In this document: positions 3,558 to 54,739 of the stretch, in pieces
How the letters are laid out: every line of letters starts with the position of its first letter
How positions within the stretch are numbered: the stretch's first letter is position 1
Virus record (IMG/VR): IMGVR_UViG_3300008261_000001
Coordinates: 1-64,000 of that record
Length of the DNA: 64,000 nt
Strand: one strand, 5' to 3'
Made by a program: the position numbers and the translations under genes
Notes under the pieces: model-generated
What the model was told of the DNA's origin: nothing
What the model saw: the letters and a program-made list of their open reading frames with translations, nothing else
The model's database searches: none

Positions 3558-3641
3558 TGTGTGTATCTCCTTTGTGAGATAATACCCCACCCTCGCTCAC
3601 AAAGGCTAAAAGGGTGGTCTTAGCCCTCGGAAGGGGTATCC

Positions 3642-5240: not shown

Positions 5241-5287
5241 GTGTGTTCTCTCCTCTGTAGAAGCGACCCTCCCCTATAGGATTTCGC

Positions 5288-5346
5288 CCTCAAGGAAATA
5301 ACACCCTCAAGGAAATAACACCCTCAAGGAAATAACACCCTCAAGA
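5288..5346. repeat. 17-bp tandem repeat CCCTCAAGGAAATAACA x3.5
   Basis: Exact copies at 5288, 5305 and 5322, partial at 5339. Confidence 0.95.
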
Positions 5347-5779
5347 TGCTGATGTACTCGTAGGAGAACTCTACGCTCGTGGATAGCTGACTAAGTTGAA
5401 CTCGGATAGCGGACATCTCAACACTACCTGCGGACACCCAAAGTTTAGCGTATGCTTTGCTTGCCCATACGGTGTATATCCATTTACACATCTCAGTAAG
5501 GAGTTTCAGTGCGTTTGTTTTCTCAAGGGGAGTTATGTTTTCTGGCATCTTTGGGTTGTAGTAGTTTCCTGCTATTCGACCTAGATACCTTGCCTCTTGT
5601 GTAAATCTGCTAAGGTAGGGGGGGAACTTCCCCTCCATCCAATAGTAGTGAGCTAGAGATATTTCTCTTTCTGTGGCATTGGATTTTTTGGATAAATCCA
5701 AAACCCCTTGAAAAGCCAGAGGTACAAGGGCATTAAAAGACTTTATGACCCTTTGGGTACGCTTTTGGATGATATCCAT
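5324..5779 (-). CDS. Hypothetical protein, 151 aa
   Basis: ORF co-oriented with neighbours; no motif. Confidence 0.65.
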   Translation of the reverse strand: MDIIQKRTQRVIKSFNALVPLAFQGVLDLSKKSNATEREISLAHYYWMEGKFPPYLSRFTQEARYLGRIAGNYYNPKMPENITPLEKTNALKLLTEMCKWIYTVWASKAYAKLWVSAGSVEMSAIRVQLSQLSTSVEFSYEYISILRVLFP

Positions 5780-5784
5780 TGCCG

Positions 5785-6291
5785 TTATCCATTAAGCAGT
5801 TTATTGGATAGTAGGCTATTGAGGCGTAAAACAGATTGCTTAAAGTATATGCGGGACTCTTCTGGTAGCTCAGATAAGAGTTTATCGACTTTTTTCAAAT
5901 CTTGCTTGGCGAGCGTAAAAGCTATTTCTTCATGCCCTAAATCTTTTAGCTCAGAGATAAGGGGTGAGAACACCTCTTTAAATGCCTTATCTATCTTAGC
6001 GTCTGCTATGCGTTGTAGGGAGGCTTTTTTGCTCCGACCAGGAAAGTACTCGGAGGGTTCTTTTTTACAGTGTGGGGAGTTTGGCTCTTTGTACTTGCAG
6101 TAGATGGACCAAGCTACAGGCCAAGATTTCTCGGGCTCGTAACCTTTCTCTTCCTCGAAATACTTTACTTTATCCTCGACATACTTGGGGAGATTCTCTG
6201 CGTTCTTGGTGGGTAAAGAGTGTGTAGAGTATCCACCGTATGCCTTTTCACTAGAGTTAAATGCAGTCTTTCTCTTGTTTGCTTTATTCAT
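5785..6291 (-). CDS. Hypothetical basic protein, possibly virion-associated
   Basis: ORF with GAGG RBS; AT-rich late-like motif upstream. Confidence 0.7.
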   Translation of the reverse strand: MNKANKRKTAFNSSEKAYGGYSTHSLPTKNAENLPKYVEDKVKYFEEEKGYEPEKSWPVAWSIYCKYKEPNSPHCKKEPSEYFPGRSKKASLQRIADAKIDKAFKEVFSPLISELKDLGHEEIAFTLAKQDLKKVDKLLSELPEESRIYFKQSVLRLNSLLSNKLLNG

Positions 6292-6385
6292 GATTACGAC
6301 CCTCTTTTTTAGTTCGTTTATAATATGTACTGCATAAATAGATTATTGAAGCCCCTCTCAGTATATCCCCTAAATGGAGGACATC

Positions 6386-7210
6386 ATGGCGAATAACGAT
6401 CTCAATCCTATTGAGGGTGGACCTCAGGGTTCATCTAGCTTGTACAAATACGGAACAACCCCCAACACTCGAACGGTTGTTTCTCAAAAGGTACGAATGA
6501 TGACTCCTGCGTATGGGGGTCGTGGCTTACTCTATCAGATTGGAGTATGCTCAGAAATAGGAGTAGGCGATACGACCAGAAGCGTGGATAAAGTTAAGGG
6601 TGTGGGTTTCGGTGATCGTATTGCTGAACTTGTACCTGGACCTTCAGAAATCGGAGCACTTAGCTTTACAAGAGCTGTGCTTTACTTATCCAATGGTCAC
6701 CAAGCATTTGGTTATGCAGGTGGTGTGGACGGAGCAGTAAGGAGCCTTCAGCACCACAGATGGCCATTCGACACGGAGCATCAGCTTGTGCTTTCACACC
6801 TTGCTAATGCCGAGCTTGGTGCAGACAGCGACACAGTGCAGGGGCTTAAGGACATTGACTTTTCTGGTCAGAATGTCACTGGTGCCGCCGAGGCTTACGC
6901 TTCTCAGAAGCTCAAGGCTATTCTATCCTATTACGAGGGTTGTTGGATAAACAGCATGGGTGGAATCACTGCGAGTGCAGACTCAGGCATGGTCACACAG
7001 AGCATCTCTGCGGACTTCACCGATCTGCACGATCTGTACAGCACCTATGGCGAGTTCTTACCTACGGGTAATGATCCTACGATTGGTCAGAACGGATCTC
7101 TCCTTTATGTGGGGGGTCGTGGTACAACGGTTACAGCGACTCAAGGGTTCTCTAACCCAGAGGACACCTTTAGTGCCTTAACAGGTGCTACCACACCCGC
7201 TGGTGGGTAA
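6386..7210 (+). CDS. Putative tail tube protein
   Basis: GVGFGDRIAELVPG...LSFTRAVLY resembles large-myovirus tube proteins; first gene upstream of chaperones and tape measure; GGAGG precedes ATG 6386. Confidence 0.65.
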   Translation: MANNDLNPIEGGPQGSSSLYKYGTTPNTRTVVSQKVRMMTPAYGGRGLLYQIGVCSEIGVGDTTRSVDKVKGVGFGDRIAELVPGPSEIGALSFTRAVLYLSNGHQAFGYAGGVDGAVRSLQHHRWPFDTEHQLVLSHLANAELGADSDTVQGLKDIDFSGQNVTGAAEAYASQKLKAILSYYEGCWINSMGGITASADSGMVTQSISADFTDLHDLYSTYGEFLPTGNDPTIGQNGSLLYVGGRGTTVTATQGFSNPEDTFSALTGATTPAGG

Positions 7211-7307
7211 TGGATAGGTGGGGAGGGGTGGGTATAAGGTTGCCGAACCTTGTGGTCTTAGAGCCTCAACTAAACGGATAACATACAACTAGGGGTTAGA
7301 AATCATA

Positions 7308-7853
7308 ATGTTGAACTTGGCACAGCTTAATAAGCTATTGGAGCCATTATCCAATATCGGCAAGGGGGAGAAGATCGTGGATGTGGCGGGGCTTCCTGTC
7401 ACTATCCGAAATCTAACTCCGCTTGAAGAATCAGAAGTCCAAAGGGCGTTGCCCACGATGAGTGAGGGTGAGGGGGCAACGCCTTTGGACTTTGTGGAAA
7501 CTTTTAGAAGGGAGACGCTTGCTAGGAGTATTGTTCAAGTGGGTGACTTGGACTTGAGAGGTCTAGACTATGTAGAAACGGGTGAGACCCTCCCTAATGG
7601 AAAACCCATAAAAGTCTCCAAGACAGAGGCTCTTATTAGGTTGATTTCGTCATGGAGCCGACCTGTTTCTACGAAGCTCTTTGAGCAGTATGGGATACTG
7701 ATCGAAGAGGTGGAAAACAACTTGGATAAAAGCCTGCTCGTATCTCCTACAGATCTGTCGGAAGAGAAGAGAAACCTCGAAGCTCGCCTTGAAGAAATCA
7801 ACAGGCGTATAGAGCTAGAGAAGATGGGCAAGCCTAAGAATGAAGGTCTATGA
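7308..7853 (+). CDS. Putative tail assembly chaperone
   Basis: Position between tube and tape measure; IRNLT, LARSIVQV pattern typical of chaperones. Confidence 0.6.
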   Translation: MLNLAQLNKLLEPLSNIGKGEKIVDVAGLPVTIRNLTPLEESEVQRALPTMSEGEGATPLDFVETFRRETLARSIVQVGDLDLRGLDYVETGETLPNGKPIKVSKTEALIRLISSWSRPVSTKLFEQYGILIEEVENNLDKSLLVSPTDLSEEKRNLEARLEEINRRIELEKMGKPKNEGL

Positions 7854-18366: not shown

Positions 18367-20643
18367 ATGACCTCAAGTGACTTAATGAGAGAACGCCTTG
18401 AGTTCGAGAGTAGAAATCAAGGTTGGTCGGCTTTGTCATTGGGCATAGCGATTGTATTGGAAATCCATTGGGAGGAGTTTAGGTGTACCTTACAGATCCT
18501 TCATGGTGCTGGGGCGGATACGACCATGAACGGAGTAGAACTGATGATGCCGTCTATGGGCAACAGGCACTTTTTAGGTGGTATCCCTGAGCGTGGGGAC
18601 AAGTGCGTAGTGGGTTGGTTTGCAACGGAAACCAAAGGAGACTCGTCACAGAAAACGCCTGCGATTTTAGCGTGGTTACCAGCTTCGAGCTACTTGGGGC
18701 ATGAGTGGATACCTGTGCAAGGAATAACGCCCGATGAAGGGCTTATGGGCAATCTAAAAGATCGCCAAAAGATACGCTCGTTTTATCAACGCATACGCCA
18801 CAAGCTCAAGCACTACAACGCGGGCAACATAGGGGCTTCTTCTTCACAAGGGGCTGACCTATTGCTCGATGAGAGTGTTCATTTATCCAATAGACGCTCC
18901 AATGAAATCATCTTAAGGGATCAAGACCAAGCCATCGTGTTTAGGTCTTTACAGCAGTTTCATGCTCTCTCTGGTGCGAGGGTCTATGGGGGCATGGTTC
19001 AACGCGATGCTAGGCTTCTGCCAAAGGAGATGTTCTCGGACGGATTAAAGTGGGACTCGGCAGTACAGCTAGATGAAAATGGAAACCCATTTATCCCCAC
19101 AGAGGAAAACAAGCTAGGTTTTGGAAAACTAGAGCCTCACCCATTGTTCAATAGGGGGGGTGATTCTCATGTAGACCTAGAGGGTGACTTCGTCTTATCC
19201 AATACGCTATTTGAGGCAGATTCACCGAATGGGAGTATTCCGACTGCTATAGACCCTTACAGATTTCTGTACAGGGCAGGTTTAGTTTCGGATAGTTTTG
19301 GGGACACAACGGATAACTACAAGGGTGAAGTTTATGGGGGCAAGTCGATTCTTAGAGTGGGGGACGCTTATGACGAGAACGCTGTTTTAACGGGTAATGC
19401 TTTCACGGAGTACAGAATAGAGGTATCACACACAACCGATGGAACATTACCTGTAACAGAGCAAACTGATGGTTTCGACAGCGACCGCTTGCCCGAGGTT
19501 CGTGGTGGCTCAGACAAAGCTCCATTTATTGAGTGGGTTATTGGAACACCCGTAGGTAATGACCCTTATTCAACGCTAGGACAAGAGTCCTATGGGTTGC
19601 CATTAGTGCCTGAGATAAACGGTGCTATAGGGCTGATTAAAGGGGCTTTACAAGCGACCCCTTTGGTAGACCATGCAGCGACTTTACTCAGAGTGAAGCC
19701 TATAGTTGAGTCGATAGAGGATAGCTTCATTACGCTCACAAAAGGGGGTAAGTTCAAGGCTTACATCTCATCCCCTCAAGCCGACTCGGTTCAAGTTTTA
19801 TCCAAAGGGGGTGTGTCTCTTAATGCCAACCTCGGTGTAGAGGTTAAAGCACCTCGTGTGTCTTTAGATGGGAGTGAGAGAGTCGAGGTATCTGGTGGTG
19901 TTATAAACATATCGGCTAACGGTACAGATATCCAAAATGGGCAAGAGTTTTCTTTGTCTATTTTGGGCAAGAAGCGTGTAAGTATTCAAAGTAGCGTGGC
20001 GGTGGAAATAAAAGCTCCCGTAGTGGATTTCTCCAACGCGGGGGAAATAAGACTAGCAAGTCAGAGTCAGCTATCTTTGAACACCGGAGCGGGTATGGAG
20101 TTATCCGCTCAGTCCATGAAGCAAGTGGCATTGGGTGAGTACAATCTGGTGGTGTCTGGACCAACGAACTTCAACACCCCTCAAGGGGCATCGAGGTCAG
20201 TCACCATAGCTTCGAACCCAGCAAGTGGAAGCGTAGGACCTTCGGATAAGTACACAAATGTGTTTGGTGGTCGTAGTGAAACATACTTGGGGGTGACGAC
20301 CAACACTAAAACTATCCTATCCGGAACAGAAACGAAAACCATAGCTGTTGGCTCCGATACGACTATCGTGGGTACAAACACCCAAGTGATTGACCCTACA
20401 GGTTTCAAGTTCTTAGCCCCTAGCGGTGGCGTTGTTGTACAAGCAGGCTTGGTAGTTTCAGTTAACGCACCATCAGTTGTGGTCACAGGTACAGCAAGTG
20501 TAGTTGTGTCCGCACCATCTATTCTGTTGTCGTCACCAGGTGCTTCTTTTGGTCCTATTGTGTGTGGCTCAGATATACACCCCATACTCGGTGTACCATT
20601 CTCTACCTTCTGCCCACCTAGAGGACAGAACCTCTCTACATAA
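18367..20643 (+). CDS. Putative baseplate central spike (gp5/gpV-like)
   Basis: N-terminal OB-like GGIPERGDKCVVGW; C-terminal Ser/Val/Gly beta-helix-like periodicity; follows the hub. Confidence 0.65.
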   Translation: MTSSDLMRERLEFESRNQGWSALSLGIAIVLEIHWEEFRCTLQILHGAGADTTMNGVELMMPSMGNRHFLGGIPERGDKCVVGWFATETKGDSSQKTPAILAWLPASSYLGHEWIPVQGITPDEGLMGNLKDRQKIRSFYQRIRHKLKHYNAGNIGASSSQGADLLLDESVHLSNRRSNEIILRDQDQAIVFRSLQQFHALSGARVYGGMVQRDARLLPKEMFSDGLKWDSAVQLDENGNPFIPTEENKLGFGKLEPHPLFNRGGDSHVDLEGDFVLSNTLFEADSPNGSIPTAIDPYRFLYRAGLVSDSFGDTTDNYKGEVYGGKSILRVGDAYDENAVLTGNAFTEYRIEVSHTTDGTLPVTEQTDGFDSDRLPEVRGGSDKAPFIEWVIGTPVGNDPYSTLGQESYGLPLVPEINGAIGLIKGALQATPLVDHAATLLRVKPIVESIEDSFITLTKGGKFKAYISSPQADSVQVLSKGGVSLNANLGVEVKAPRVSLDGSERVEVSGGVINISANGTDIQNGQEFSLSILGKKRVSIQSSVAVEIKAPVVDFSNAGEIRLASQSQLSLNTGAGMELSAQSMKQVALGEYNLVVSGPTNFNTPQGASRSVTIASNPASGSVGPSDKYTNVFGGRSETYLGVTTNTKTILSGTETKTIAVGSDTTIVGTNTQVIDPTGFKFLAPSGGVVVQAGLVVSVNAPSVVVTGTASVVVSAPSILLSSPGASFGPIVCGSDIHPILGVPFSTFCPPRGQNLST

Positions 20644-21092
20644 TGGATAACCACATGAGACTTTATTACTTTGCCTACGGTTCAAACCTCAACCAAGAAC
20701 AGATGGCTGATAGGTGTCCCACAGGGAGATTTCATAAGTTCGCGGTGCTCGGTGGATATTCACTTTGCTTTAGGGGGTACAGCCACAAGAGAAACGGAGC
20801 TGTAGCGTCCGTACAGAAAGACGAGAAGTCTTATGTGGAGGGTGTCCTCTACAACATATCCTTAGACGACCTCAAGCTATTGGATAAGTTCGAGGGTTAT
20901 CCAATGTCTTATATGCGTTCGAGCATGGACATCATTACGGATAGTGGCGGACTTGTTAAAGCTCTTGTGTACTTCAAAGAGGATAGCGAGCCTTTGGGGA
21001 TACCCTCGGCTGAGTACTTGGAAATCATCACCAAGTACTACTACCGCTATGGGTTCTCTTTAGAGAACCTAAGGAAATCCTTAACTCTTTAA
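20643..21092 (+). CDS. Gamma-glutamylcyclotransferase (AIG2-like) family protein
   Basis: YFAYGSNL...VEGVLY...LDKFEGYP..Y signature. Confidence 0.92.
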   Translation: MDNHMRLYYFAYGSNLNQEQMADRCPTGRFHKFAVLGGYSLCFRGYSHKRNGAVASVQKDEKSYVEGVLYNISLDDLKLLDKFEGYPMSYMRSSMDIITDSGGLVKALVYFKEDSEPLGIPSAEYLEIITKYYYRYGFSLENLRKSLTL

Positions 21093-21133: not shown

Positions 21134-21505
21134 ATGAGAAGGCTATCATCACCAAATGTAGCTAATGCGGAGACCGCTTGGCAGAACAACAGAAGGACTT
21201 TCCTAAAGGACACCATATCGGTTATAGCGGATAGGTTATTAGACGAGGGTGTGGGGTTCATTAAAGATGAAAACCATCGCGTAGGGAGATTGAACGATGA
21301 CAGGCTTCGTATAGCGTTGTACGATGTATTAGATGACAGAGGGGAAGGTTGGAAAGATTATTTATCTTTAGGGCAAGAGGCGTACAATCAGTTTAATGTG
21401 GGTCTTGCGGTTTTCCGTTCAAAGATAGAGAAAAGCAGATTTAGGATAGAGGAAGTGGTATCCCCTACAACGGGAGTTCATGGTTGGAAGATTACTCGCT
21501 TATAG
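21134..21505 (+). CDS. Hypothetical protein, 123 aa
   Basis: AAGGAG RBS; begins MRRLSS like the protein at 45006..45434. Confidence 0.7.
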   Translation: MRRLSSPNVANAETAWQNNRRTFLKDTISVIADRLLDEGVGFIKDENHRVGRLNDDRLRIALYDVLDDRGEGWKDYLSLGQEAYNQFNVGLAVFRSKIEKSRFRIEEVVSPTTGVHGWKITRL

Positions 21506-21517
21506 TTCATTTATAGA

Positions 21518-21565
21518 CCGAGATAGGGATAGGTTGAGAAACCCTTAACCCAACCCCTATCTCGG
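21518..21565 (+). other. Long hairpin upstream of gene (copy 1)
   Basis: CCGAGATAGGG...CCCTATCTCGG 11-bp stem. Confidence 0.8.
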
Positions 21566-21575
21566 AGTAAGTAAG

Positions 21576-21941
21576 ATGAGAACAGCAAGCGAAGTTGTAA
21601 GAAGCCTTGAGCAGAGGATTGCTCGCCTTGAAAGACAATCCAGTATCTTGGGTAAGACCTGTGTGATTGAGAAAATGTATAGGGGAGGCAGAGAAGGTGA
21701 GAGGGGTGAAGCCGTTCTTAATTGTAATGGAGTTAAGCTGTCCATAAAGTTCGACCTTTATGGTTATTCGACGGTGATTGGAAATGACCAACACTTGGAA
21801 AGTACAGGGGCGTTGGGACTCTTAGACAATCTTAAGATGGAGTATGGTGTGCCTAAAATCAAAGAGTTCATCGCTAAATGTATTGCGATAGCAGGTAGAG
21901 AAGGTATGACTCTTGACGAGTGTATCAAAATCGCCCGATAA
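21576..21941 (+). CDS. Hypothetical protein with RTASEV..LE.RIARLE leader
   Basis: N-terminal about 20 aa shared with the next gene; remainder unrelated. Confidence 0.8.
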   Translation: MRTASEVVRSLEQRIARLERQSSILGKTCVIEKMYRGGREGERGEAVLNCNGVKLSIKFDLYGYSTVIGNDQHLESTGALGLLDNLKMEYGVPKIKEFIAKCIAIAGREGMTLDECIKIAR

Positions 21942-21961
21942 ACAGATGCCTTGTTTATTTA

Positions 21962-22017
21962 TACTCCGAGATGGGGGATAGGTTTTAACCCTTAACCCAA
22001 CCCCTATCTCGGAGTAA
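21962..22017 (+). other. Long hairpin upstream of gene (copy 2)
   Basis: TACTCCGAGATGGGGG...CCCCTATCTCGGAGTA, about 16-bp stem; loop nearly identical to copy 1. Confidence 0.8.
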
Positions 22018-22021
22018 TGAC

Positions 22022-22627
22022 ATGAGAAGAACAGCAAGCGAAGTTTTACAGGAGCTTGAGACAAGAGTTGCCCGCCTTGAGAGGAAGGCTTGGAACCCCT
22101 TCAAGAAAAAAGAGGCACCCGTTGCCCCCGTGGAAGAGAAAGGGGCGTGGTCTACAAGCTATCCAGCTTTGGATTTGGGCTACAAAGGTCACACAAAAGA
22201 GGTGGTTCAGATGGGTCTTAATAACCTTGTCTATTCGGGCGATGAGGAAACCGTTGGGGATGTGGTTAAAATACACCTGCGTGATATGCACGGAACCACC
22301 TATGTGGAGGGAGCCTCAGCAGGGGACTACTATCGAAGGAATCTTAATGTGGATATAAAGAAAGTATCCGTAAGGTCTGTTTGGCTAGAAGAAAAGTCTA
22401 GCCGAAAGATAGATCTAGCTGTAGTGTTAGATGTGGTTTACGGTGATGTTTCACACCGAATGATGGATGGCGACACCTGGACGGATAGTCATGGGGGTAA
22501 GGGTACATTAGTGTCCTCCATAGGTGGTGTGATCTATATGTTCGAGGGACACGAATCGGATGACATTGCGATCAAGTATCTGCAAAAAAAGGAAGGCAAT
22601 AAGTACTTCAAGCTCTGGGGTAAGTGA
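22022..22627 (+). CDS. Hypothetical protein with RTASEV..LE.RVARLE leader
   Basis: As for 21576..21941. Confidence 0.8.
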   Translation: MRRTASEVLQELETRVARLERKAWNPFKKKEAPVAPVEEKGAWSTSYPALDLGYKGHTKEVVQMGLNNLVYSGDEETVGDVVKIHLRDMHGTTYVEGASAGDYYRRNLNVDIKKVSVRSVWLEEKSSRKIDLAVVLDVVYGDVSHRMMDGDTWTDSHGGKGTLVSSIGGVIYMFEGHESDDIAIKYLQKKEGNKYFKLWGK

Positions 22628-24186: not shown

Positions 24187-24223
24187 CTGAGCCTCCTGTG
24201 CTGTGTTTGGTTTCCACCCCCCT

Positions 24224-24252
24224 CTAATAAGAGCGACCCACACTTGGGATAA
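24224..24252 (-). promoter_or_regulatory. Promoter-like cassette TTATCC-N17-TATTAG
   Basis: Conserved boxes with 17-nt spacer; points into ORF 24186. Confidence 0.75.
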
Positions 24253-24394
24253 TAATAAATGAATAAAATAGATCTGTGTTTACTGATGGGGAGCTTTTAC
24301 ACGCTCCTATTAACAAATGGAAACCCAAACAAGACACCTGTGTTTCTTGCTGTGACAAGTACCTTGTTTTTCTTCACTTGGTTGTTCGGTGAGC

Positions 24395-28000: not shown

Positions 28001-31000
28001 CTAGCGGTTCGTCAGACTCTTTAGTGCAAATAGATCAGGCTTCGGATAAACCGAGCTTTCCATTTTAGCCAAAGTCCCTTGAGTCCGATGTGTCCTCGTT
28101 TTAATCCAAGCCATTCGTGACTCCCTCGCCTGTAAAACACCCAACCCATCATCCAAGTCACTCGGCAAACCTGAGCCCAACTCCCCATAACCCTCCGTTA
28201 TTAAAACAGAGTCCTCTATCACAACACGCCTGTCCAAGACACTTAAACAGGTGTTTGTGTTCACAAAAGGCTTTGAGCTTGTTAAGCCCTTAATGTTGTC
28301 CAACAACAACTCATTAGACGGATGTGTAGGATCCCCCTCACCCACAAGGCTCATGTAATCGTCTGCCTCATAGTCTGCCCAACTGACCATGTCCGTAGGA
28401 AACGACATAAACCTACGCACACGCTCAGACCAAGATAGTGTCCTCTCCCGATAAAATAAGAAGTCTTCAGCTACGCTCTGCACCAACCCATTTTTCATCC
28501 GAACTATCCGATACGAGAAGGGATGTACGCTATCGGTAGTCGTCGAATAAGTGCCTCCCTCCACCCCTGAGGTCACCCTTAAGGGATTTCCTAAATCTCC
28601 ACCAACACTAGGCAAGAGGTTGTAGGTGGACTTATCCTTAGTCCCTACACTACCGCTTACTATGAGGTAATCAAGTCCAACCTCTAGAACACGATACGAA
28701 CCTCTGTTGTCGTCCAACTCATGTGGCTCACCCTCTATGTACCCAACCTCACCTAGCTTGCCCTGATCCCCACGCGGTGGATACCCATACTCTACAGGTG
28801 AACTATCCAATAACGCCCCTTGTGGATCTATCACAAGGTAATCACCCACAAGGACACCAAGATCTAAGAAGTCTGCATTGGTATCCACGAGCTTACCCTC
28901 TAGAGGAACGGATATGCCCTCTTGTGCAGGAGACTCGTAAAGCACCTCAAACCCCTGTGAGAAGTACTCATCAAACGACTGCAACTGAGGAATAAGCCCA
29001 CCCACCCTTGTCTTAATCCTAAAGCTGTAAGCCTCCGCGATAGATGAACCCCTTACCCAACTACAAGTCAACTCCCCATCCACAACCCCCACAACCCTCA
29101 AGTACAACGCCTCTGTTCCGTCCTCCTTGTGGATAAACACATGGTCTCCCATCTGCACCACATTAGAGAAGTTTCCAATTTGGGTATCCGTCCCATCGGT
29201 GTCTTCTTCAATCAGATAGTTCACTTGCTTGGGAGTTAGGACATACACGCCCTCGCCCTCGTCTGTAAGATTTAACACCAAGCCCTCTCTCCCCTCATAA
29301 ACATAACGCAAAGAGGAGACACCCTCAACCACACCCTTTAGGACATCGGTGAACCTACGAGGTCTCCTAGCCACCAACTGCACCCTCTCTGTGAAATCCC
29401 ATGCGGGTAAATCCGATAGGGTGTAATCTATGGGGCTTCTTACATTACTACTGCCGTCTCCAAATACACTCTTGGTTGAATAGTCTCTCACCAACAGCGG
29501 AAAAGACTTATCCAAGTATATTCCACCTAAGACCGTCACGCTCATGGATAATACATCTAGGGGCAATAAGAACCCCTCCCCATAAGAGTTAACATCGGTG
29601 ACTTCACCTAAAGAACCCCACTCTATTCCGTAAACGACTCCGTCTGTACCCCTAAGAGCCGTAAGAGATGACGAGGTATCCCCTCCACCAGCTACACCAA
29701 GTGTAAACTGAATACTTCCACTTAAAGTACAAGGAGCTTCGCTAGGCACAAGGGAGGTCTTAACAAGGTCGAACTTAGCCCTTGTCCCACCTGTAATCAC
29801 TTGCCCATACGCCTCACCCAATATGTCGCTCAGTTCACTGAAGTCCACGACCGTCCCATCTAAATACGCCACGGAGCCATCTACAAAACTAAAGCTCGTC
29901 TCTGTCCTTGAGGCATAAGATATCCGTAGGGCTGATCGACCATAGACGGAGTCGTACACACCCAAAGTCGTAGACATGGGTCTAGATGAAACCCCCACTG
30001 AGTCTAAAATAACAATCAAGTCCCCAACAGAACCAAAGAAAGAGGACAACTCGGTGTTGTCTGTACTCAGTGTGGCTGAGATACCCAATACGCTTAAACC
30101 TGTCACCTTAGGGAATGAAATAACAACAGACTGACTCTGTGTCACAATCTCTCTAATCTCTTCGTCTGCGACACCCTCCGTGTAAAACTCCACTCGGTGA
30201 AGTCCAGAGTTATGCCCAGAGCTAACAACTAAGAAATCTCCCTTCAGAATATTATCCGCAGGTAAAGAGAGATTATGGATAACACCAGATAGGTTATCCG
30301 TAGAGCCCCCACTCAACACCAAGCCCATGTCCCCCTCACCGACATAGATAACACCTTGTTCGTTGACCTCCGACCCTACCATAATGGATAAACCGACCCC
30401 ACTCAAAGCAACCGAGTTTTCACCGCTTGAGCGATATCCGTAGATTAATAACCCATCGGATAAGATTTCTTTAATCTCAAAGGCTGAACCCCCATTTATG
30501 ACGGACGAGTTATTCACATCGGAAGATACGATGTGAGTACCACCCCCACCACCTACGGACTCATAAACAAGAAAACCGCTGTCCAAAACCTCAACCGAGG
30601 ACGAGTAGCTACCTTGTACCTCATAAGAGTCAAATAATGGATAACTCTCCCTAATAGAGACACGATCCGATGGGATATAAGCCGATGGGGATTGGGCTGT
30701 ATAGCCCAAGTGGAAATCCATAAACCAAGCCGAACCCACACCTGTGTAGATGGTCGTACCGCTTGTGGTGGTTAAGCCACCCAAGCCCCCCCAAAATGAG
30801 GAAGCTCTGAATAACCAAGTCTCACCCGTAAAGGCAGGAGCAGGTGGGACATTGGGATTATCTATGGGTGAGTCCACGATGGTGAGCGTGTTGCCCACAT
30901 AGGTGAAGGAAGTCATGTTGTCTGGTGAGTACGCCACATAACCAAAGCCAAACCTTTGGAAACTCACCGTCCAATCTGTCACGCCCCTTGTAAAAGTAAA

Positions 31001-34000
31001 CCGACCATATCGGATTAACCCTCCGTTCAAGTACACATCTAGCCGTATCTCGTTACCTGTGCTACCCTCGCCCGCAAGGTAGTCGAAATAAAGGAAATAA
31101 TCTCTGTACTTGGTGTTGGAAAACACGAGTTCTACAGTCGATACATCGTACTTGCCAGAGCTAGGGATACCCTCGCTCAAGGTCTCCGTTACGCTCACAC
31201 CGACCGCGTCATCGGATAAGTGATAAACGAGAGCGTTATTGACTCTGTAAGAGAGAGAACCACCCGAGTTCGAGGCGGAGAACCTCGGTGGCATGATTTC
31301 AGTTCCGTTTATCCAACCCAACTCCAGAAGCCTGTCCTCGAACACCATGAGGTCTGATTGTCTAGGTGTTTGTACACACTCACCAATCGCTGTGGCTACA
31401 GAGTAGTCATATGTTGTGACAAGGACACCATCCACGCCCTCTACGCCATCGTCCCTAACCTCATCTGGATAAACATATTCAAGGCTCCCATTGTTGTCTG
31501 CTTGTGCTGTAAGTCTCTCTAAATAGGGAGGAACCGTGACGAGAATATCCTTTTCTGTTAAGGGCTTCTTAAAGGGTATAGACTCGTCTCCGTCGTCGTT
31601 TACACCCAATCCCATGAGTGCTGGATACACATAAGGTTCCAAGCTAGTGTTTCCAAAAGTAACCGACCCCTCAAGAGCCGTGTGTGCCGAGGGGACATTT
31701 TGACCTAAGATTTCTTTAATAGGATAGTTAGGGTCAGACCCACTTGGCAAGGTTATGTCGAATATCTCACCCTCTGCCGACCTTAGTCCCACATCGACAC
31801 CCACACGATAAACACTGCTGTCTCCTTCTTCGTCCAAATCGAGGGCAAAGCTCTGAACAATCGTGTCTCCCCTCTTGGGGGCAAAAGCTGAACCAAAGGC
31901 TGTTATTAAGCTACCCTCCAAGACCACCACACACCCATTTACGATTTCTTTAATCCTCGCGTTCCGAGGTTCTCCAGTTAATGAAAACACAGAGTCATAG
32001 GCATACTCCCCCTCGTTCAATACGGGAGAGAAGCCAACACCATCAACACCCAACTGTAGCTTATCCCCCACACGCAACCCATTAAATACCCTTTCTAAAT
32101 TCCCCACCACCACATCGGATAAATCCCCACCCTCAGATAAGAACCTATCTGTTATTGGATAACCAGTAAGTGGGTCTATGGGAAACTCACTCAGTGGGAC
32201 AGCGGATAAGATGAGGCTAGGTCTTCCTACAGAGCTAGGAGCATATTCACTAAACCCATTAGGCGAATACGACACAACTCTGAACCTTGCTCCCCTCTTA
32301 GAGAGAGTTAAGCTGGATATGTTTTTTAATGAACCGAAAGCTGGGTTTTCTACGAGTGCTATGACATCCGTAAAAGTGCTCTCAAAGTCCCTAAAAAAGA
32401 ACAACTCCCCACCGCCTCGATAAGTCATCATCTTAGCCGACTGCGGATACAGCCTCGACTCTACACTCGGTTTCCACAAGGGCGAATAAATGGGAGCGTA
32501 CTCATACTTAATGAATGGATAACCCACACCCATGTCATAAGACATACGCTTTTCATAAGAAACCAAAGCGTAGTCGTCTATCTCGTTCTCTATGAGATTC
32601 CTCTGTGTAGATTTCTTCTTCTTAAAGTCCAAGACGCTCGATACACCCTCTGCATCTATCAAGTATCTTGGATAAATCTCCCTTGTGATGGGGTCTTCTA
32701 ATCCCGCACCACACCACTTGTCTCCCCTCAAAAGCTCGAACTTAAACAACCCATCCGCATCACCCACGACCTTGCCCGTTGTACTTGAGACAAGCTCGTC
32801 CACTGGCTTAATAAAACCATCGTATCTCTTTATCCAATTTCTAGCCACCACATCAGAGGCGAGAAGATCAAAATATCCAATAGACCTCCCTCGCTGAGTG
32901 TTTTCTGTCCGAGTTATCTTCGCCCCAAATCCCCTCTTGTCACTCACCTTGAGACTATCCAATAACTCTCTCTCTACCTCGCCTTCATAGGTTTGTTCAG
33001 CGACTGTTCTGAAGTAAAACACATCTGGGGCATACACCATGCACTTAGCGTAAATCTTCTTGCCCGTGTGCTCAGTCGGAACTCTCCTTTCCGTAAAACT
33101 TAACTCGTACTTCGGATACTCCACCTCGCCTGTGGCTAAAACCCTCTCACTGACCACCCCTTGTGCCGTATGCTTTAAGTAATAACTCTCACCCACAGAT
33201 ACGCCCAAACCACCCAACAAGTTTAACACATCCGAACTCAGAGCGTAGTCAACCCCCTCTACAAGCTCATAACCCAAACCCTCCGACTCCACATAACGGA
33301 TAAGAGTATAGCCCTTATCCGTTAAAACCTTGCTCGATAAAGCTAAAGATTTATCCCCCACTTTAAGCACAGCCCTCATCGACACCAATAACTCACTCAC
33401 ATTGTGTTCTGCCGTTTGCCCCCTCACTCCTAAAATAGTCACCCCATTAATCAAAGACACCGAAAGTACCTCGTAAGCAATACCTGCCAACATCAATAAA
33501 CCACCCACCTTAAATAAATCCCTCAAGTCACCCTCTACAGAAATCTCCCCACCACCCAAACGGCTCTTACAAACAACCCCACTTACGCTCTTGAAAACAT
33601 AACCAGATGCCCTCAAGACACTCACATCACTCGACTTTATCCCATACCTCGCAGGAGGATACACGGATAAGTTTCCATTAGAACCGACCGCAGTCACCCT
33701 AAAGATATGTCCAGATAGATTTAACAAATCATCTACAGCCACTAAACCACTCGGTATCCAACTCGAAATCGTACTGCTACCAATACTTATCTCTAAGTCC
33801 TCAACCTCTTTTATTCCAGTAGATACCCTAACCGAATACTCCCCACCCATAGACCTCGTCACATAATAACTAACACGCACATCCCCCACCGCGTTCACAT
33901 AAATAATCCTGTCACTCGTTATGCTCGCACCAGATGTGACAATAGATGCCCCGTCATACAAAGTAAATAAATCACTATCCAAGACCACCCCTCGCTCCAA

Positions 34001-36697
34001 CCCCCCATAACTGTAAACTCCGCTCTCCAATAAAACCGCACTCTCCTCCCTAACTAAAAATAAAACACCCTCCAAGACACGCTCGCTCTCCGTAAAAGGA
34101 ATATAAGACACCTCAACACCCACACCAGACTCTAAAGGAGACTCAAAAGATATAGCACCAGTGCTAACCTCATATCTCACACGCCCCCTGTCCAATAACT
34201 CCATCAACTCTAAAGCAACACCCTCACCAAATGGACTCGATAAGTCGTCCAATGACGCACTCACCTCCGCCCTGTCCGTTAAAACATCTCTCGGAACCCC
34301 CTTGTAATAACACACACCCACCCAACTGCTATCCAATACCCCATCGCTCTCAAAATATATCCGTCCACTCACCGAGTCCCTCGTAAAACCATAACCATCT
34401 ACAATAACACCCTCCTCATAGGTGACACCATCAACCTCTAATCTGTAATAACCATCTCGCCTCTGAATATCCGATATGTAAAAATCACCCAATAACTCCC
34501 TCTTTAAAATCACTAAGGGATAATAAACCGAACCCCCAACCTCCCTCAAATATAAACTAGATGTAGGATGCACATTGGATAAATCCATACCCCAATTGCG
34601 AATAATGTACACCTCACAACTACGCCTCTCACTGTAAAGCCTCTCCCAACACTCCCCCAACACTAAATCAGAACCACCCACACCCCCACCCTCATGCTCC
34701 TCCCATATGTTAGAGGATTCATCTATCCTATCCATACTCGATAAAACCCCATCCCCTGAGATAACACGCCTCCATAAAACCACCCCAGATGTTATCTGCC
34801 TAACAAAGTTCCCCTCCGCCTTATCCAAATCCTCTAAACGACCACTACCCACCACATTAAGCCAACCCCTCAGAAATCTTAAACGCCCCCCCAACCCATA
34901 CAAAACATCAAAATCTACACCCTCACTCAAAACCTCACCACCTATAGACAAACCACCCACCAACGACAAAACTCCACCACTCGTCTCTAAACCATCCAAT
35001 ACCCCACGCACATAACCACTACGAGAAACAACACCCAACCATGTAATCGAGTTATCCATATCCAAACCATACTCAATGTCCTCCCCCTTCGTTAAATAAC
35101 CACCACCCTCCACCCTAAAGTGCCTGCTACCCGTTGCGTCCGCCCCACCCCTAAATAAAGACACCTCACCCAAACCACTCAGCAGACTTAAAGATAAACC
35201 CCCACCACCGACCACACCCACCTCCTCGTCATCATAACTTACATAACCACCCACACTAAGTGAACCCACACTTAAAAAGACACCACCCGCCCAACGCTCA
35301 TGTGGCACTAAACCCAACTTATCCAAATCCCCAGACACAGACTCCCCTAAGACCCTTATGTGTCCATAACGATCCACATCCACTAAACCCTCCCCCCCTA
35401 CAAGATCCCCCCCTACCCACGACACCAAATCCCCATCAACTAAAATACTCCCACTGCCCGATAAAGGCTTGCTCGATACCATACCCAAACCCACCCTGTC
35501 CATACCCACTAACCCCGTGCCGTACTTGGCCCCCGTTAAATCCACTCGCCCCCCTGTGTACACCCTCCCAAAGTCCCCTGAGCCCAACGATACATACGCC
35601 ACACCCACCTTACGCTTCTTAAACTCAGGTACATCCTCTACATACTCACACAATAAAACATCCCCACTCAATAACCTCACATACGAACCCAATAAATAAC
35701 CCCTAAAGAAACCACGCCTCACCCCCTCACCCAATCCGTCCTTCTCCCACTCCCAACCACTCACCCCAAATGAACCCTCCCCTATTACCCCACTTTCCAA
35801 CTCACTCTCCGACTCCATAAACACACGATCACTACATAACGCTAACCCCTCATACACCAACTCGTAATCCCCCGACCAATACACACGCCCAGCCTCCCTA
35901 TCAAACTCAAAATCAGTCAAGAAATCCCCCACACCACCCACTCGCCTCAATAATGGAAACTCATTCAAACGAGGACAAGGAGATAAATAATCTCCTGACC
36001 TTAACGCACTACCGCCCACTAAAGATCCCCTGATTAAGATTATCCCCAAACCCCTGTCCTCGTCACTCAACGAACCCCACCTTAACTCACTACCCTCACT
36101 ATCCATTAACCCATATGAAGAAGATAAATCACCACCCCCAACAAGAATGTCCTCACCCACTGTTAGCCTCTTCGAACCCACCACCAACTCGTCACCTAAC
36201 CTCAAACCCACTAACCCCCCATCACCCACTACACCAAATGACTCCCCACGACCCCCACCCAATAACTTCCATGTCGAACCCTCCCACTTAAAACGCTCCC
36301 TCACACCATCGTTTGCCGTCCACCAATAACTCACCCCCTCCAAATATACCAACCCATCCGGCTCACCCCCCTCTGATTCTGCTACTCCTAAACCACTATC
36401 CAATACCTCTAAACTCTCCCCCCCACGAGTCGCTGATCTTATCCTATTCCCACCAAGCTCCACACCCCCATACCAAATACCACCCCCTACAGATACCCAA
36501 CTGATCTCCCTCGATACATCACCCACTGCACCATCCCCCGCAGATATCCATAAGACTTCCCCCTCCCCCCTTATAGCCTCATAGTCATAACCCAATAAAT
36601 CCACCCCTCCCCTCACAATACGACTGCCCAAACCCGTCAGCGTGTTGTTCCCATCCCCAGACCTTACATCTAGCCTCAGTAATGTTAATGTACTCAT
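28001..36697 (-). CDS. Giant protein (2898 aa), probable baseplate/tail-associated structural protein
   Basis: Uninterrupted 8.7-kb ORF; recurring L.EG(V/E)D(Y/F/I) motifs; function inferred. Confidence 0.75.
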   Translation of the reverse strand: MSTLTLLRLDVRSGDGNNTLTGLGSRIVRGGVDLLGYDYEAIRGEGEVLWISAGDGAVGDVSREISWVSVGGGIWYGGVELGGNRIRSATRGGESLEVLDSGLGVAESEGGEPDGLVYLEGVSYWWTANDGVRERFKWEGSTWKLLGGGRGESFGVVGDGGLVGLRLGDELVVGSKRLTVGEDILVGGGDLSSSYGLMDSEGSELRWGSLSDEDRGLGIILIRGSLVGGSALRSGDYLSPCPRLNEFPLLRRVGGVGDFLTDFEFDREAGRVYWSGDYELVYEGLALCSDRVFMESESELESGVIGEGSFGVSGWEWEKDGLGEGVRRGFFRGYLLGSYVRLLSGDVLLCEYVEDVPEFKKRKVGVAYVSLGSGDFGRVYTGGRVDLTGAKYGTGLVGMDRVGLGMVSSKPLSGSGSILVDGDLVSWVGGDLVGGEGLVDVDRYGHIRVLGESVSGDLDKLGLVPHERWAGGVFLSVGSLSVGGYVSYDDEEVGVVGGGGLSLSLLSGLGEVSLFRGGADATGSRHFRVEGGGYLTKGEDIEYGLDMDNSITWLGVVSRSGYVRGVLDGLETSGGVLSLVGGLSIGGEVLSEGVDFDVLYGLGGRLRFLRGWLNVVGSGRLEDLDKAEGNFVRQITSGVVLWRRVISGDGVLSSMDRIDESSNIWEEHEGGGVGGSDLVLGECWERLYSERRSCEVYIIRNWGMDLSNVHPTSSLYLREVGGSVYYPLVILKRELLGDFYISDIQRRDGYYRLEVDGVTYEEGVIVDGYGFTRDSVSGRIYFESDGVLDSSWVGVCYYKGVPRDVLTDRAEVSASLDDLSSPFGEGVALELMELLDRGRVRYEVSTGAISFESPLESGVGVEVSYIPFTESERVLEGVLFLVREESAVLLESGVYSYGGLERGVVLDSDLFTLYDGASIVTSGASITSDRIIYVNAVGDVRVSYYVTRSMGGEYSVRVSTGIKEVEDLEISIGSSTISSWIPSGLVAVDDLLNLSGHIFRVTAVGSNGNLSVYPPARYGIKSSDVSVLRASGYVFKSVSGVVCKSRLGGGEISVEGDLRDLFKVGGLLMLAGIAYEVLSVSLINGVTILGVRGQTAEHNVSELLVSMRAVLKVGDKSLALSSKVLTDKGYTLIRYVESEGLGYELVEGVDYALSSDVLNLLGGLGVSVGESYYLKHTAQGVVSERVLATGEVEYPKYELSFTERRVPTEHTGKKIYAKCMVYAPDVFYFRTVAEQTYEGEVERELLDSLKVSDKRGFGAKITRTENTQRGRSIGYFDLLASDVVARNWIKRYDGFIKPVDELVSSTTGKVVGDADGLFKFELLRGDKWCGAGLEDPITREIYPRYLIDAEGVSSVLDFKKKKSTQRNLIENEIDDYALVSYEKRMSYDMGVGYPFIKYEYAPIYSPLWKPSVESRLYPQSAKMMTYRGGGELFFFRDFESTFTDVIALVENPAFGSLKNISSLTLSKRGARFRVVSYSPNGFSEYAPSSVGRPSLILSAVPLSEFPIDPLTGYPITDRFLSEGGDLSDVVVGNLERVFNGLRVGDKLQLGVDGVGFSPVLNEGEYAYDSVFSLTGEPRNARIKEIVNGCVVVLEGSLITAFGSAFAPKRGDTIVQSFALDLDEEGDSSVYRVGVDVGLRSAEGEIFDITLPSGSDPNYPIKEILGQNVPSAHTALEGSVTFGNTSLEPYVYPALMGLGVNDDGDESIPFKKPLTEKDILVTVPPYLERLTAQADNNGSLEYVYPDEVRDDGVEGVDGVLVTTYDYSVATAIGECVQTPRQSDLMVFEDRLLELGWINGTEIMPPRFSASNSGGSLSYRVNNALVYHLSDDAVGVSVTETLSEGIPSSGKYDVSTVELVFSNTKYRDYFLYFDYLAGEGSTGNEIRLDVYLNGGLIRYGRFTFTRGVTDWTVSFQRFGFGYVAYSPDNMTSFTYVGNTLTIVDSPIDNPNVPPAPAFTGETWLFRASSFWGGLGGLTTTSGTTIYTGVGSAWFMDFHLGYTAQSPSAYIPSDRVSIRESYPLFDSYEVQGSYSSSVEVLDSGFLVYESVGGGGGTHIVSSDVNNSSVINGGSAFEIKEILSDGLLIYGYRSSGENSVALSGVGLSIMVGSEVNEQGVIYVGEGDMGLVLSGGSTDNLSGVIHNLSLPADNILKGDFLVVSSGHNSGLHRVEFYTEGVADEEIREIVTQSQSVVISFPKVTGLSVLGISATLSTDNTELSSFFGSVGDLIVILDSVGVSSRPMSTTLGVYDSVYGRSALRISYASRTETSFSFVDGSVAYLDGTVVDFSELSDILGEAYGQVITGGTRAKFDLVKTSLVPSEAPCTLSGSIQFTLGVAGGGDTSSSLTALRGTDGVVYGIEWGSLGEVTDVNSYGEGFLLPLDVLSMSVTVLGGIYLDKSFPLLVRDYSTKSVFGDGSSNVRSPIDYTLSDLPAWDFTERVQLVARRPRRFTDVLKGVVEGVSSLRYVYEGREGLVLNLTDEGEGVYVLTPKQVNYLIEEDTDGTDTQIGNFSNVVQMGDHVFIHKEDGTEALYLRVVGVVDGELTCSWVRGSSIAEAYSFRIKTRVGGLIPQLQSFDEYFSQGFEVLYESPAQEGISVPLEGKLVDTNADFLDLGVLVGDYLVIDPQGALLDSSPVEYGYPPRGDQGKLGEVGYIEGEPHELDDNRGSYRVLEVGLDYLIVSGSVGTKDKSTYNLLPSVGGDLGNPLRVTSGVEGGTYSTTTDSVHPFSYRIVRMKNGLVQSVAEDFLFYRERTLSWSERVRRFMSFPTDMVSWADYEADDYMSLVGEGDPTHPSNELLLDNIKGLTSSKPFVNTNTCLSVLDRRVVIEDSVLITEGYGELGSGLPSDLDDGLGVLQARESRMAWIKTRTHRTQGTLAKMESSVYPKPDLFALKSLTNR

Positions 36698-37326: not shown

Positions 37327-37397
37327 GTCGCACCCCCTCCTCTACATATGTTGTTATCCATCCTATCTGCACTAAATACACACATAAACAAATAACA

Positions 37398-37735
37398 CCA
37401 TATACCCCTATAAGCATACACCCATATACACCCATATACCCCTATAAGCATATGCGACCATATACCCCTACTTCGACCACATACCCTATAAGCATATATG
37501 ACCACACCCCCAACCGCAGAAGACTCACCCAACCACGACCCCATCACCTATCACCGTACTCCGACTAAGCATATATGACCCTATGTGCTTATGTGAATAT
37601 ATGACCCTATGTGCTTATATGACCATATGTGCTTATATGACCATATGTGCTTATATGACCATATGTGCTTATATAAGACCCCATTTTTAACATTTAATAT
37701 TTAACATATTTTAACATTTAACATTCAACAAAAGT
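37398..37735. repeat. Iteron-like repeats plus AT-rich tract (origin-like island 1)
   Basis: CCATATACCCCTATAAGCATA-like x3-4 (37398-37503); 18-bp ATATGACCATATGTGCTT x4 (about 37600-37671); TTTAACA-rich AT tract 37684-37735. Confidence 0.85.
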
Positions 37736-38306: not shown

Positions 38307-38347
38307 CAAAATGGAAAGTTTTTTCACCGAAGATTTTTCTCGAAAGA

Positions 38348-38376
38348 TTATCCCAAATTGGAAAGTCCTTTATTAG
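38348..38376 (+). promoter_or_regulatory. Promoter-like cassette
   Basis: TTATCC-N17-TATTAG. Confidence 0.75.
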
Positions 38377-38462
38377 TGGGGGACAGCCTAGAGAGCGAGA
38401 AGCACAGATACCAACCCACACAGATACCAACCCACACCCCTTCATACGGAGGCATGATAGAT

Positions 38463-39194: not shown

Positions 39195-39233
39195 AGGCTA
39201 GGGGGGCTAGGGCGGATAAAGTTTTCCATTTTG

Positions 39234-39262
39234 TTATCCCAAGTCCAAAGCTCGTCTATTAG
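39234..39262 (+). promoter_or_regulatory. Promoter-like cassette
   Basis: TTATCC-N17-TATTAG; near-identical inverted copy of the 38277 cassette. Confidence 0.75.
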
Positions 39263-39297
39263 GGGGGGCAACCGATAGACTAGGAGCTACAGACAGT

Positions 39298-45005: not shown

Positions 45006-45434
45006 TTACCGCCTACGAGCTTCGAGACGAGCGATGCGGGTTTCGAGACTTCTGAGTACATCAGAGGCTGATCTTCTGCTACCCATACCGTGGGTGTTAT
45101 AGAGGCTACGCTCGTGTTCCGCATCGGATGCCCCTTCTGCCCAATCTTGATAAGAGCTAATGCTCTCGTTTAGCTCTGAGATGGCACTTGCGGATAAGGG
45201 GCTCATAGCGAGTATGTCTAATGCCTCACTGAAGTCCCCTGAGGTGAGGGCTTCGTTGAGGGACTCTAAACCACGCTGTCCAAAGACAGACCTTCTTTGT
45301 GTGGGGGACATCTCAAGCCAAATACCATGTAGTGTTGAGAAACACGCTTTCGCCTCTGCCGTGGGGCGACCACTCACCGCCGCATGGTTTAACGCTGAAC
45401 AACCAAGATAGTCTCTAGATGATAATCTTCTCAT
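45006..45434 (-). CDS. Hypothetical protein with C-terminal RSASDVLRSLETRIARLE motif
   Basis: GGAG before ATG 45434 (MRRLSS); motif shared with the N-termini of 21576 and 22022. Confidence 0.75.
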   Translation of the reverse strand: MRRLSSRDYLGCSALNHAAVSGRPTAEAKACFSTLHGIWLEMSPTQRRSVFGQRGLESLNEALTSGDFSEALDILAMSPLSASAISELNESISSYQDWAEGASDAEHERSLYNTHGMGSRRSASDVLRSLETRIARLEARRR

Positions 45435-47975: not shown

Positions 47976-48000
47976 TGTCTCTCTCCTTCGTGAGTTAAGT

Positions 48001-49551: not shown

Positions 49552-49625
49552 AAAATTAGGAAACTTTTTCTCCTCACCACTGACCCCTCCATAATGGAGG
49601 GGGGTATGAAAAACTTTCCATTTTC

Positions 49626-54736: not shown

Positions 54737-54739
54737 TTT

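Follow-up and report, generated by a model that had tools for sequence, protein, structure and literature searches.

Evidence for a portable cassette of promoter-like box, leader hairpin and 24-residue tag on unrelated genes of a huge uncultured lake phage

The DNA analysed here, referred to as the window, comprises bases 1-64,000 of the 290,179-bp IMG/VR record IMGVR_UViG_3300008261_000001, which represents an uncultured lake phage (CheckV completeness, 93%). Two neighbouring genes of the window, encoding proteins of 121 and 201 aa, share a promoter-like box, a long leader hairpin and their first 23-24 codons, and diverge completely thereafter. The finding is real and far larger than the two copies in the window, and its reading as a cassette is supported: the tag encoded by these codons and the leader are added to, or missing from, protein bodies that are otherwise homologous or unrelated. 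The cassette appears to consist of three joined parts, namely a TAATAG-N4-TTTATA box, a leader hairpin and the 23-24 codons of the tag. By analogy with phage T4, we favour, at a little under even chances, a late-type promoter set against a hairpin that would conceal the ribosome site in read-through transcripts and, joined to these, a tag that acts as a capsid-targeting signal or propeptide, comparable to the T4 capsid targeting sequence (CTS).

In copy 1, the box (TTATAG, 4 nt, TTTATA; 21500-21515 on the plus strand, with TTTATA at 21510-21515) overlaps the stop codon of the upstream gene (21503-21505). The leader hairpin occupies 21518-21565 (+), and its minimum free energy fold has an outer helix (21518-21528/21555-21565) and an inner helix (21532-21538/21544-21550). 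The conserved A/C-rich word AACCCTTAACCCAACC, which contains TTAACC twice, lies at 21540-21555 (+). The Shine-Dalgarno sequence GGAG (21564-21567, +), the first two bases of which are in the stem, stands 8 nt 5' of the ATG of gene 1 (21576-21941, +; 121 aa), which begins with the tag MRTASEVVRSLEQRIARLERQSS (codons 1-23; 21576-21644) and continues into an orphan body. In copy 2, the box (21948-21963, +; TTTATA at 21958-21963) has a weak upstream half, and the hairpin (21963-22015, +) begins at the last base of the box with a 15-bp outer helix (21963-21977/22001-22015). AACCCTTAACCCAACC recurs at 21987-22002 (+), identical to copy 1 over 16 nt, and GGAG (22011-22014, +), 7 nt 5' of the ATG, is fully paired with CUCC. 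Gene 2 (22022-22627, +; 201 aa) begins with the tag MRRTASEVLQELETRVARLERKAW (codons 1-24; 22022-22093), again followed by an orphan body, and the two start codons are 446 nt apart.

The hairpin of copy 1 folds at -35.1 kcal/mol (z = -7.3 against dinucleotide shuffles) and that of copy 2 at -34.0 kcal/mol (z = -5.2, or -7.6 in a further folding analysis), and in either case none of 200 shuffles was as stable. The products begin MRTASEVVRSLEQRIARLE and MRRTASEVLQELETRVARLE, both of the form MR(R)TASEV..LE.R[IV]ARLE, and past about codon 20-24 BLASTP finds no similarity between them even at E = 1. The duplicated box, hairpin and start of about 20 codons on unrelated genes, as described in an earlier note made from the window, are thus present in both copies, with sequence and folds in agreement. 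The same note had supposed that the hairpin takes the place of a Shine-Dalgarno sequence, which is not the case, because GGAG lies in, or at the foot of, the 3' arm of each hairpin and pairs with CUCC. This pairing is formed beside the box, and the likely control mechanism turns on the GGAG hidden in it.

Pfam and PHROG scans of both window proteins gave no match, and a word search with the body of the 201-aa protein returned no relative besides itself. One relative of this protein, P0017 (truncated, 128 aa, 69% identity), came from the tag search described below. AlphaFold2 (AF2), run on the 201-aa protein without an alignment, gave a predicted local distance difference test score (pLDDT) of 41 and modelled the tag alone, as a helix of residues 5-22; a search of the ESM Atlas with the protein returned nothing usable.

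A whole-genome search for AACCCTTAACCCAACC together with the 3' arm, as the earlier note had proposed, found six near-identical hairpins in the 290-kb genome (21540+, 21987+, 149775+, 150430+, 159563+ and 224937-) and none in a reversed-genome control, so that the likeness of the two window copies is far beyond chance. The stems of the six vary by compensated changes (CCGAG/CTCGG versus CCAAG/CTTGG) and by a few mismatches. The tag peptide is more frequent than this hairpin, with at least 16 copies: it is N-terminal in 14 genes, internal in one open reading frame (ORF) of 222 aa and C-terminal in one of 142 aa, and two further copies are degenerate. The C-terminal copy is the third tag of the window; the ORF lies at 45006-45434 on the minus strand, ends in the 24 residues SRRSASDVLRSLETRIARLEARRR (approximately 45009-45080) and has its own box and hairpin. 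Most of the remaining tag genes likewise have a TTTATA box and a hairpin of quite different sequence, the closure of which is still CUCC...GGAG. The tagged bodies in the genome are mutually unrelated except for those of 149811 and 150466 (35% identity), and the tag genes are dispersed over both strands, between genes for replication and for structural proteins.

The tag logo reads M-R-R-T-A-S-E-V-[LI]-R-x-L-E-x-R-[VI]-A-R-L-E-[RKG]-[QRK]-[AST]-[AST] over 23-24 codons, and its information drops to background straight after residue 24; these codons encode a predicted amphipathic helix. Tag copies differ by 810 synonymous and 467 non-synonymous codon-pair differences, including serine AGY/TCN switches, with serine encoded by AGC, AGT, TCA, TCG or TCC and arginine by AGA, AGG, CGT or CGC. 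Because synonymous differences exceed non-synonymous ones, the tag is selected as a peptide. In five copies of the six-copy hairpin family, leader identity is 0.78-1.00, as compared with 0.41-0.71 at third codon positions of the adjacent tag. Thus, leader and peptide are each constrained in their own way, since the leader is better conserved than the third positions and the peptide is kept despite synonymous change.

The tag is widespread in metagenomes. A profile of 19 tags matched 836 clusters at E <= 0.001 among 1.84 billion representative proteins; in 141 of the best 150 clusters the tag lies within the first eight residues, and most of these proteins have 90-370 aa. Pfam gave nothing informative on 148 tagged proteins (three weak single matches), and PHROGs, applied to 15, gave one family and one weak match, both of unknown function. 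A degenerate DNA pattern was used to find the tag in IMG/VR contigs and prokaryote genomes: it occurs in approximately 30 stretches of IMG/VR contigs, and no match was found in 185,579 prokaryote genomes. A complete relative of 375,691 bp, with a capsid protein 97% identical, has 24-31 tag genes. No tag was found in Bacillus phage G, Tunturiibacter phage Tunturi_5 or the uncultured phage LR745208. A tblastn search of GenBank phages with a 30-aa tag gave no match at E = 10 and is uninformative, the query having probably been masked by the low-complexity filter.

Could these genes be ordinary paralogues that arose by gene duplication and remained alike at the 5' end through initiation constraint or gene conversion? 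The pair 149811/150466 is a true duplicate, with a leader identity of 100%, but the other bodies are without similarity, the tag has kept its peptide although its synonymous codons are near saturation, one and the same body is found tagged and untagged, and the 836 tag-headed clusters differ in length and sequence. Contigs from other metagenomes (runs X6 and X3) join copy 2 back to copy 1 of the window (21554/21573 to 21989/22019; 'goes back 436/447'), which could be counted in favour of duplication; the joins are either real recombination between cassettes or an assembly artefact at the repeat. According to contigs from four runs, the repeat interrupts assemblies and collects paralogous copies. 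Taken as an account of the whole family, simple duplication is highly improbable.

The most direct support for a portable cassette comes from a comparison of tagged and untagged members of one family. At 160291 a tag protein of 131 aa is encoded, the body of which is a member of phrog_9437; the 98-position profile of this family does not include the tag. The 56 homologues of this body fall into 28 that fit the tag pattern and 28 that lack it; of the latter, a few are degenerate or truncated, and those that are clearly untagged (98-104 aa) start with the body itself. In homologues of 121-133 aa the tag is accompanied by a short linker; those of 200-225 aa carry an additional domain besides the tag, or else an N-terminal domain and then an internal tag. 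The bodies of tagged and untagged members are 70-80% identical, and gain or loss of the tag is therefore recent. In the three contexts examined, box and leader are present at the one tagged homologue and absent at both untagged ones, and one of these leader-less genes adjoins three tag genes. The portability claimed in the earlier note is supported by this family and by the presence of the tag on 14 otherwise unrelated proteins here and in hundreds of clusters elsewhere. A model of the phrog_9437 body (L014 3291-3683; genome 160291-160686) has a pLDDT of 88.9 and consists of a helix and a five-stranded sheet. The best PDB match of this model, the C-terminal DNA-binding domain of T4 MotA, is too weak to be of use (E = 0.24; template modelling score, 0.40-0.48).

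The box belongs to a larger class of sites. The genome contains 148 copies of TTTATA, 65 of which lie within 130 nt 5' of a gene start on the same strand, where about 11 are expected by our own estimate. These upstream copies share a conserved T at -10 and TA(G/A) at -7 to -5, giving the consensus TAATAG-N4-TTTATA. The box stands 5' of the small gene that precedes the portal gene (portal operon), of a head-module gene, of the decoration gene and of a gene for a 2658-aa protein with a tail-fibre-like start. Because head-module genes use it too, the box is probably a late promoter, and as a sequence it appears to be phage-specific; no sigma-70-type site was found at either window cassette. Box and tag also go together elsewhere, since the box precedes 22 of 23 tag genes but only 69 of 405 others in the 375-kb relative (p = 3e-15), and 23 of 31 tag genes as compared with 51 of 273 others at other foreign loci.

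A hairpin directly 3' of the box is the rule for this promoter class. Where a box gene has a leader of -10 kcal/mol or below, the helix starts 0-3 nt past the box in 31 of 36 cases, and at least three of the four Shine-Dalgarno bases are paired in 25 of 32 box-gene leaders. Folding z averages -5.4 over 11 tag genes, as compared with -2.1 over 63 further box genes and -0.6 over 256 genes that lack a box. Relatives also close their leaders with CUCC/GGAG, in hairpins of 20 bp whose sequences are unrelated (z = -2.9 to -9.5 in four of five), and in the 375-kb relative a short closure, CUCCAUUG/CAAUGGAG, encloses a large conserved loop. In a crude test of self versus cross pairing between the arms of two hairpin types, the mean number of contiguous pairs was 6.2 versus 4.8. 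The loop word TTAACC(C)TTAACC is found 5' of tag genes even in distant phages; it precedes 16 of 23 tag genes and 54 of 405 others in the 375-kb relative (p = 5e-9), and 15 of 31 tag genes and 22 of 273 others at other foreign loci (p = 9e-8). Two identities were rejected for the leader: that of a known RNA family, because Rfam gave only generic hairpin (microRNA) matches far below gathering scores, and that of an intrinsic terminator, because no U-tract follows the stems.

This anatomy suggests a translational gate. The hairpin, which begins 0-3 nt past the box, would be closed by pairing of its 5' foot CUCC with GGAG and would present the conserved TTAACCCTTAACC in its loop. If the box acts as a -10-like element, the transcripts of the cassette itself would begin a few bases downstream, inside the 5' arm. 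Such transcripts would lack the CUCC foot, so that GGAG would be free and the gene translated; read-through transcripts from upstream would keep the whole hairpin, with GGAG hidden and the gene silent. Expression of a cassette would then be independent of its landing site, which fits the scatter of these genes on both strands.

Leaders of T4 that sequester the ribosome site were reportedly described by McPheeters in 1986. In the T4 genes e, soc, 49 and I-TevI, the ribosome site is hidden in read-through transcripts, and a late promoter lies in the 5' strand of the hairpin (PMC3014915, section 29). The leaders studied here resemble these in that the Shine-Dalgarno sequence is paired in a stable hairpin, with a putative AT-rich phage promoter at the 5' strand, which the cassette's own transcripts would lack. 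They differ in the box, which is TAATAG-N4-TTTATA as compared with TATAAATA in T4, in that the arrangement holds as a rule for one promoter class across the whole genome, and in that the tag genes add a coding tag. A second precedent is provided by the promoter early stem-loop (PeSL) cassettes of T4-type phages, mobile intergenic repeats before ORFans that are thought to mediate modular shuffling (PMC2839356, PMC4122927). Stop codon, promoter, stem-loop, Shine-Dalgarno sequence and start codon follow one another in the same order in both. However, PeSLs have sigma-70 early promoters, of which none was found here; their stems are terminators with G/C tracts, whereas the stem here pairs the Shine-Dalgarno sequence and is followed by no U-tract; and PeSLs end before the coding sequence, whereas the present repeat runs 24 codons into the gene.

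It is conceivable, although we think it rather unlikely, that the hairpin is not a gate but a stabiliser of the mRNA 5' end, a terminator or insulator like PeSL, or a regulator site at TTAACCCTTAACC; this alternative bears on the RNA part alone and would fit any reading of the tag. The hairpins come after the stop codon of the upstream gene, and some PeSL classes place a terminating stem-loop between the -10 box and the start site (PMC2839356). Moreover, the loop word is kept as sequence beyond the needs of a stem, and conserved sequence dominates over a short closing helix in the 375-kb relative. A terminator is, however, at odds with the lack of a U-tract, and neither a pure terminator nor a pure stabiliser would need the CUCC/GGAG pairing that is kept beside the box across unrelated hairpins. 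Stabilisation of the 5' end or insulation against upstream transcription, as by PeSL stem-loops, could also operate in addition to gating.

The carrier of the cassettes is a huge virulent phage with a capsid protein resembling that of Bacillus phage G. Its major head protein (292 aa) matches phrog_2522 (2.7e-51) and is of the phage G gp27 type, with identities of 90% to LR745208 (485 kb), 47% to Tunturi_5 and 39% to phage G gp27. The head module, which lies beyond the window and includes the large terminase, has the order portal, then two tag genes, a protein of 1062 aa that starts like the tag, head maturation protease (phrog_18299, 5.5e-17), an acidic scaffold-like protein of 494 aa, decoration protein, capsid and two more tag genes. 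The tag would direct small, fast-evolving orphan proteins into the scaffold core of the assembling prohead, the head maturation protease would probably remove it there, and the cargo proteins would then be delivered into the next host. Capsid targeting is suggested by the positions of tag genes between portal and protease and directly after the capsid gene, and by the small, orphan and fast-changing bodies. The sharp boundary of the tag, which ends in L-E and has A-S-E and S-L-E inside (the motif type of the phiKZ/SPN3US protease), and the basic-small motifs (RTAS ... [RK][QK]AS) that flank the helix, a motif that recurs in the scaffold-like protein, also point in this direction. An R-L-E is contained in the tag as well.

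The CTS borne by IPI-III and Alt, internal proteins of T4, is said to have been described by Mullaney and Black in 1996. The internal proteins of T4 are diverse and share only this targeting sequence of 10-20 residues, which guides them to the scaffold core and is cut off by the prohead protease (PMC3012670, PMC5694885). Similarly, the present tag is a short N-terminal peptide that ends in Glu and is the sole common part of small, diverse, fast-evolving proteins in a phage with portal, prohead protease and scaffold genes. There are, however, clear differences. The two peptides have no sequence similarity, and the tag has 24 residues as compared with 10-20; it is borne by 16-31 scattered genes per genome rather than by a few at one locus, and it also occurs internally or C-terminally. 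The phage lineage is a different one, with a 292-aa capsid protein of the phage G type, and packaging and cleavage are proposed here by analogy. No relationship was found between tagged proteins and known internal head protein families in Pfam and PHROGs.

In phiKZ and SPN3US, the propeptides of inner-head and ejection proteins are cut at S/A/G-X-E, phiKZ gp93 is cut at SLE-13, and SPN3US gp53 and gp54 share an identical N-terminus of 15 residues (PMC5694885). A conserved N-terminus on otherwise diverged head proteins is common to these proteins and the tagged ones, and the tag contains A-S-E and S-L-E. Their proteins, however, are paralogues with long propeptides, whereas the bodies here are unrelated, and the protease here is not detectably of the T4 gp21 family. 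The cargo-loading peptides of encapsulins offer another likeness, in that a short N- or C-terminal peptide sorts unrelated cargo into an HK97-fold shell; they are, however, extended motifs that bind the shell protein directly, whereas the tag is a predicted helix and is absent from a relative whose shell protein is 90% identical.

Several observations weigh against a late capsid-targeting cassette. A helicase gene has the box as well, which is thus not confined to structural genes. LR745208 lacks the tag, so that the capsid protein alone is not a sufficient tag partner. The majority of tag genes lie outside the head module, and the tag is internal or C-terminal in places, unlike the T4 targeting sequence. 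The protease matched no Pfam protease family and, by sequence, no solved structure, and none of the 148 tagged proteins had an informative function match.

Some of these observations would suit a tag that is retained as a short coiled-coil helix for docking or oligomerisation and that recruits accessory proteins to another structure or complex of the phage, for example the tail, the exterior of the capsid, a factory for replication or assembly, or the membrane. The logo contains a canonical heptad (core A5, L9, L12, V/I16, L19 and A23; E occupies e positions and R a g position), AF2 gives one long helix that continues into the body, and N-terminal, internal and C-terminal placements would all be tolerated by such a helix; the positions of most tag genes beyond the head module and the tag-less LR745208, with its nearly identical capsid protein, fit as well. 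The five tag or tag-like genes in the head module beside portal, protease and capsid, together with the sharp boundary and the small/basic flanks resembling processing sites, nevertheless count against such a docking helix, which we consider unlikely. Still less probable is a recognition signal governing turnover, folding or export (for example a degron, or a handle recognised by a phage or host AAA+ machine, a chaperone or a secretion route) that would give many small effectors a common fate in the infected cell. The invariant basic start M-R-R and the N-terminal position, from residue 1, on hundreds of unrelated small proteins would agree with such a signal, but no hydrophobic segment of Sec or Tat type is present, no dedicated machine was noted beside the tag genes, these genes cluster in the head module, and the tag is confined to phage sequence, with none in the 185,579 prokaryote genomes. 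A Tat signal was also considered separately and rejected, since the tag has no hydrophobic core.

Comparison with LR745208 points to possible partners of the tag. The central helix of the scaffold-like protein, LKAANARLARQVRKLADN, and most of the 1062-aa head protein (its N-terminal 900 residues) are kept in the tag-bearing relative and missing in the tag-less LR745208. A complex prediction with the tag (residues 1-40 of a 160-aa protein) and the scaffold-like helix (residues 240-305) gave a score of 0.03, which is not evidence either way.

No function has been assigned to the majority of the genes of huge phages, which are known mainly from metagenomes. An easily recognised tag with its own switch groups hundreds of such orphan proteins into one functional class; should they be capsid cargo, they would be candidates for injected effectors that act early, for instance anti-defence factors. 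In the broadest form of the proposal, huge aquatic phages with a phage G-type capsid would mark 5-8% of their genes (16-31 per genome, in more than 800 clusters) as injected capsid cargo by means of a 24-residue signal, which would move together with a promoter and a self-gating leader that limits translation to its own late transcripts. We regard this as possible but more doubtful than the capsid-targeting reading of the cassette itself. If it is true, sequence alone could show which proteins uncultured huge phages inject. It appears that a promoter, a translational gate and a protein address label are passed on and used again as a single unit. No description of the tag peptide was found in the literature searched, nor any earlier description of a tag combined with a gated leader; the union of a capsid-targeting-like tag with a gated late leader is plausible by analogy. 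The timing control and targeting proposed in the earlier note are likewise plausible from the anatomy and the T4 precedents. As a possible tool, the tag might serve, like the T4 targeting sequence before it, to bring foreign proteins into large capsids, and the arrangement of box against hairpin could aid the annotation of promoters and transcription units in this phage group.

The window DNA has a GC content of approximately 47-48%, and many short gene blocks lie on both strands. Near-identical DNA is present in lake and other freshwater metagenomes, in 20 public DNA runs from 15 studies, and this phage was present in none of the public RNA runs. The large terminase gene of the 375-kb relative (3264-7340, -) matches in three separate pieces, which suggests intein- or intron-like interruptions. 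Another N-terminal motif, M..LR.(K/R)LI.LAH..P.LRP.LLPLL, occurs once in this genome, at 199253 (-), and twice near the capsid gene of the tag-less LR745208 (locus L057, 10716 and 18343, +), and may be another tag system.

A second repeated motif of the window, TTATCCCAAG-N16-18-TTATTAG followed by a G-run, is present in at least a dozen copies between 38,270 and 60,220 on both strands (e.g. 38345-38381, 39231-39267, 49623-49659, 52469-52501, 54737-54773, 58856-58892 and 60169-60205), and also at 24217-24257. Its copies occupy the short gaps that separate small divergent genes, and it is probably a different promoter or operator class, possibly for an early region. The sequence TGGATAA / TTATCCA, which resembles the core of this motif, recurs in the hairpin loops or apical stems of many box genes (e.g. 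151036+, 138951+, 223689-, 209761- and 226035-) and in the leaders of loci L016, L019, L022 and L025, where it could be a binding site.

Among the other genes of the window, a gamma-glutamyl cyclotransferase-like gene (GGACT, 1.9e-12; 20643-21092, +) lies 3' of a 758-aa ORF, which ends a long plus-strand block containing a weak tail-protein match (phrog_52). The phage also encodes an Fe/Mn superoxide dismutase (45502-46104, -; Pfam Sod_Fe_N, 4e-22, and Sod_Fe_C, 6e-29). A single ORF of 2898 aa (28001-36697, -) has no Pfam match, and in its region GC skew falls to -0.64 and the plus strand carries C-rich repeats. The gap after this giant ORF (37376-37682) contains AT-rich tandem repeats with a period of approximately 18 and a unit like CATATGTGCTTATATGAC. 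Short tandem-repeat arrays with units of 15-17 nt (GGGTTAGGGCTAGTGG and its relatives) are found at 47991-48066, 50969-51048 and 53622-53684.

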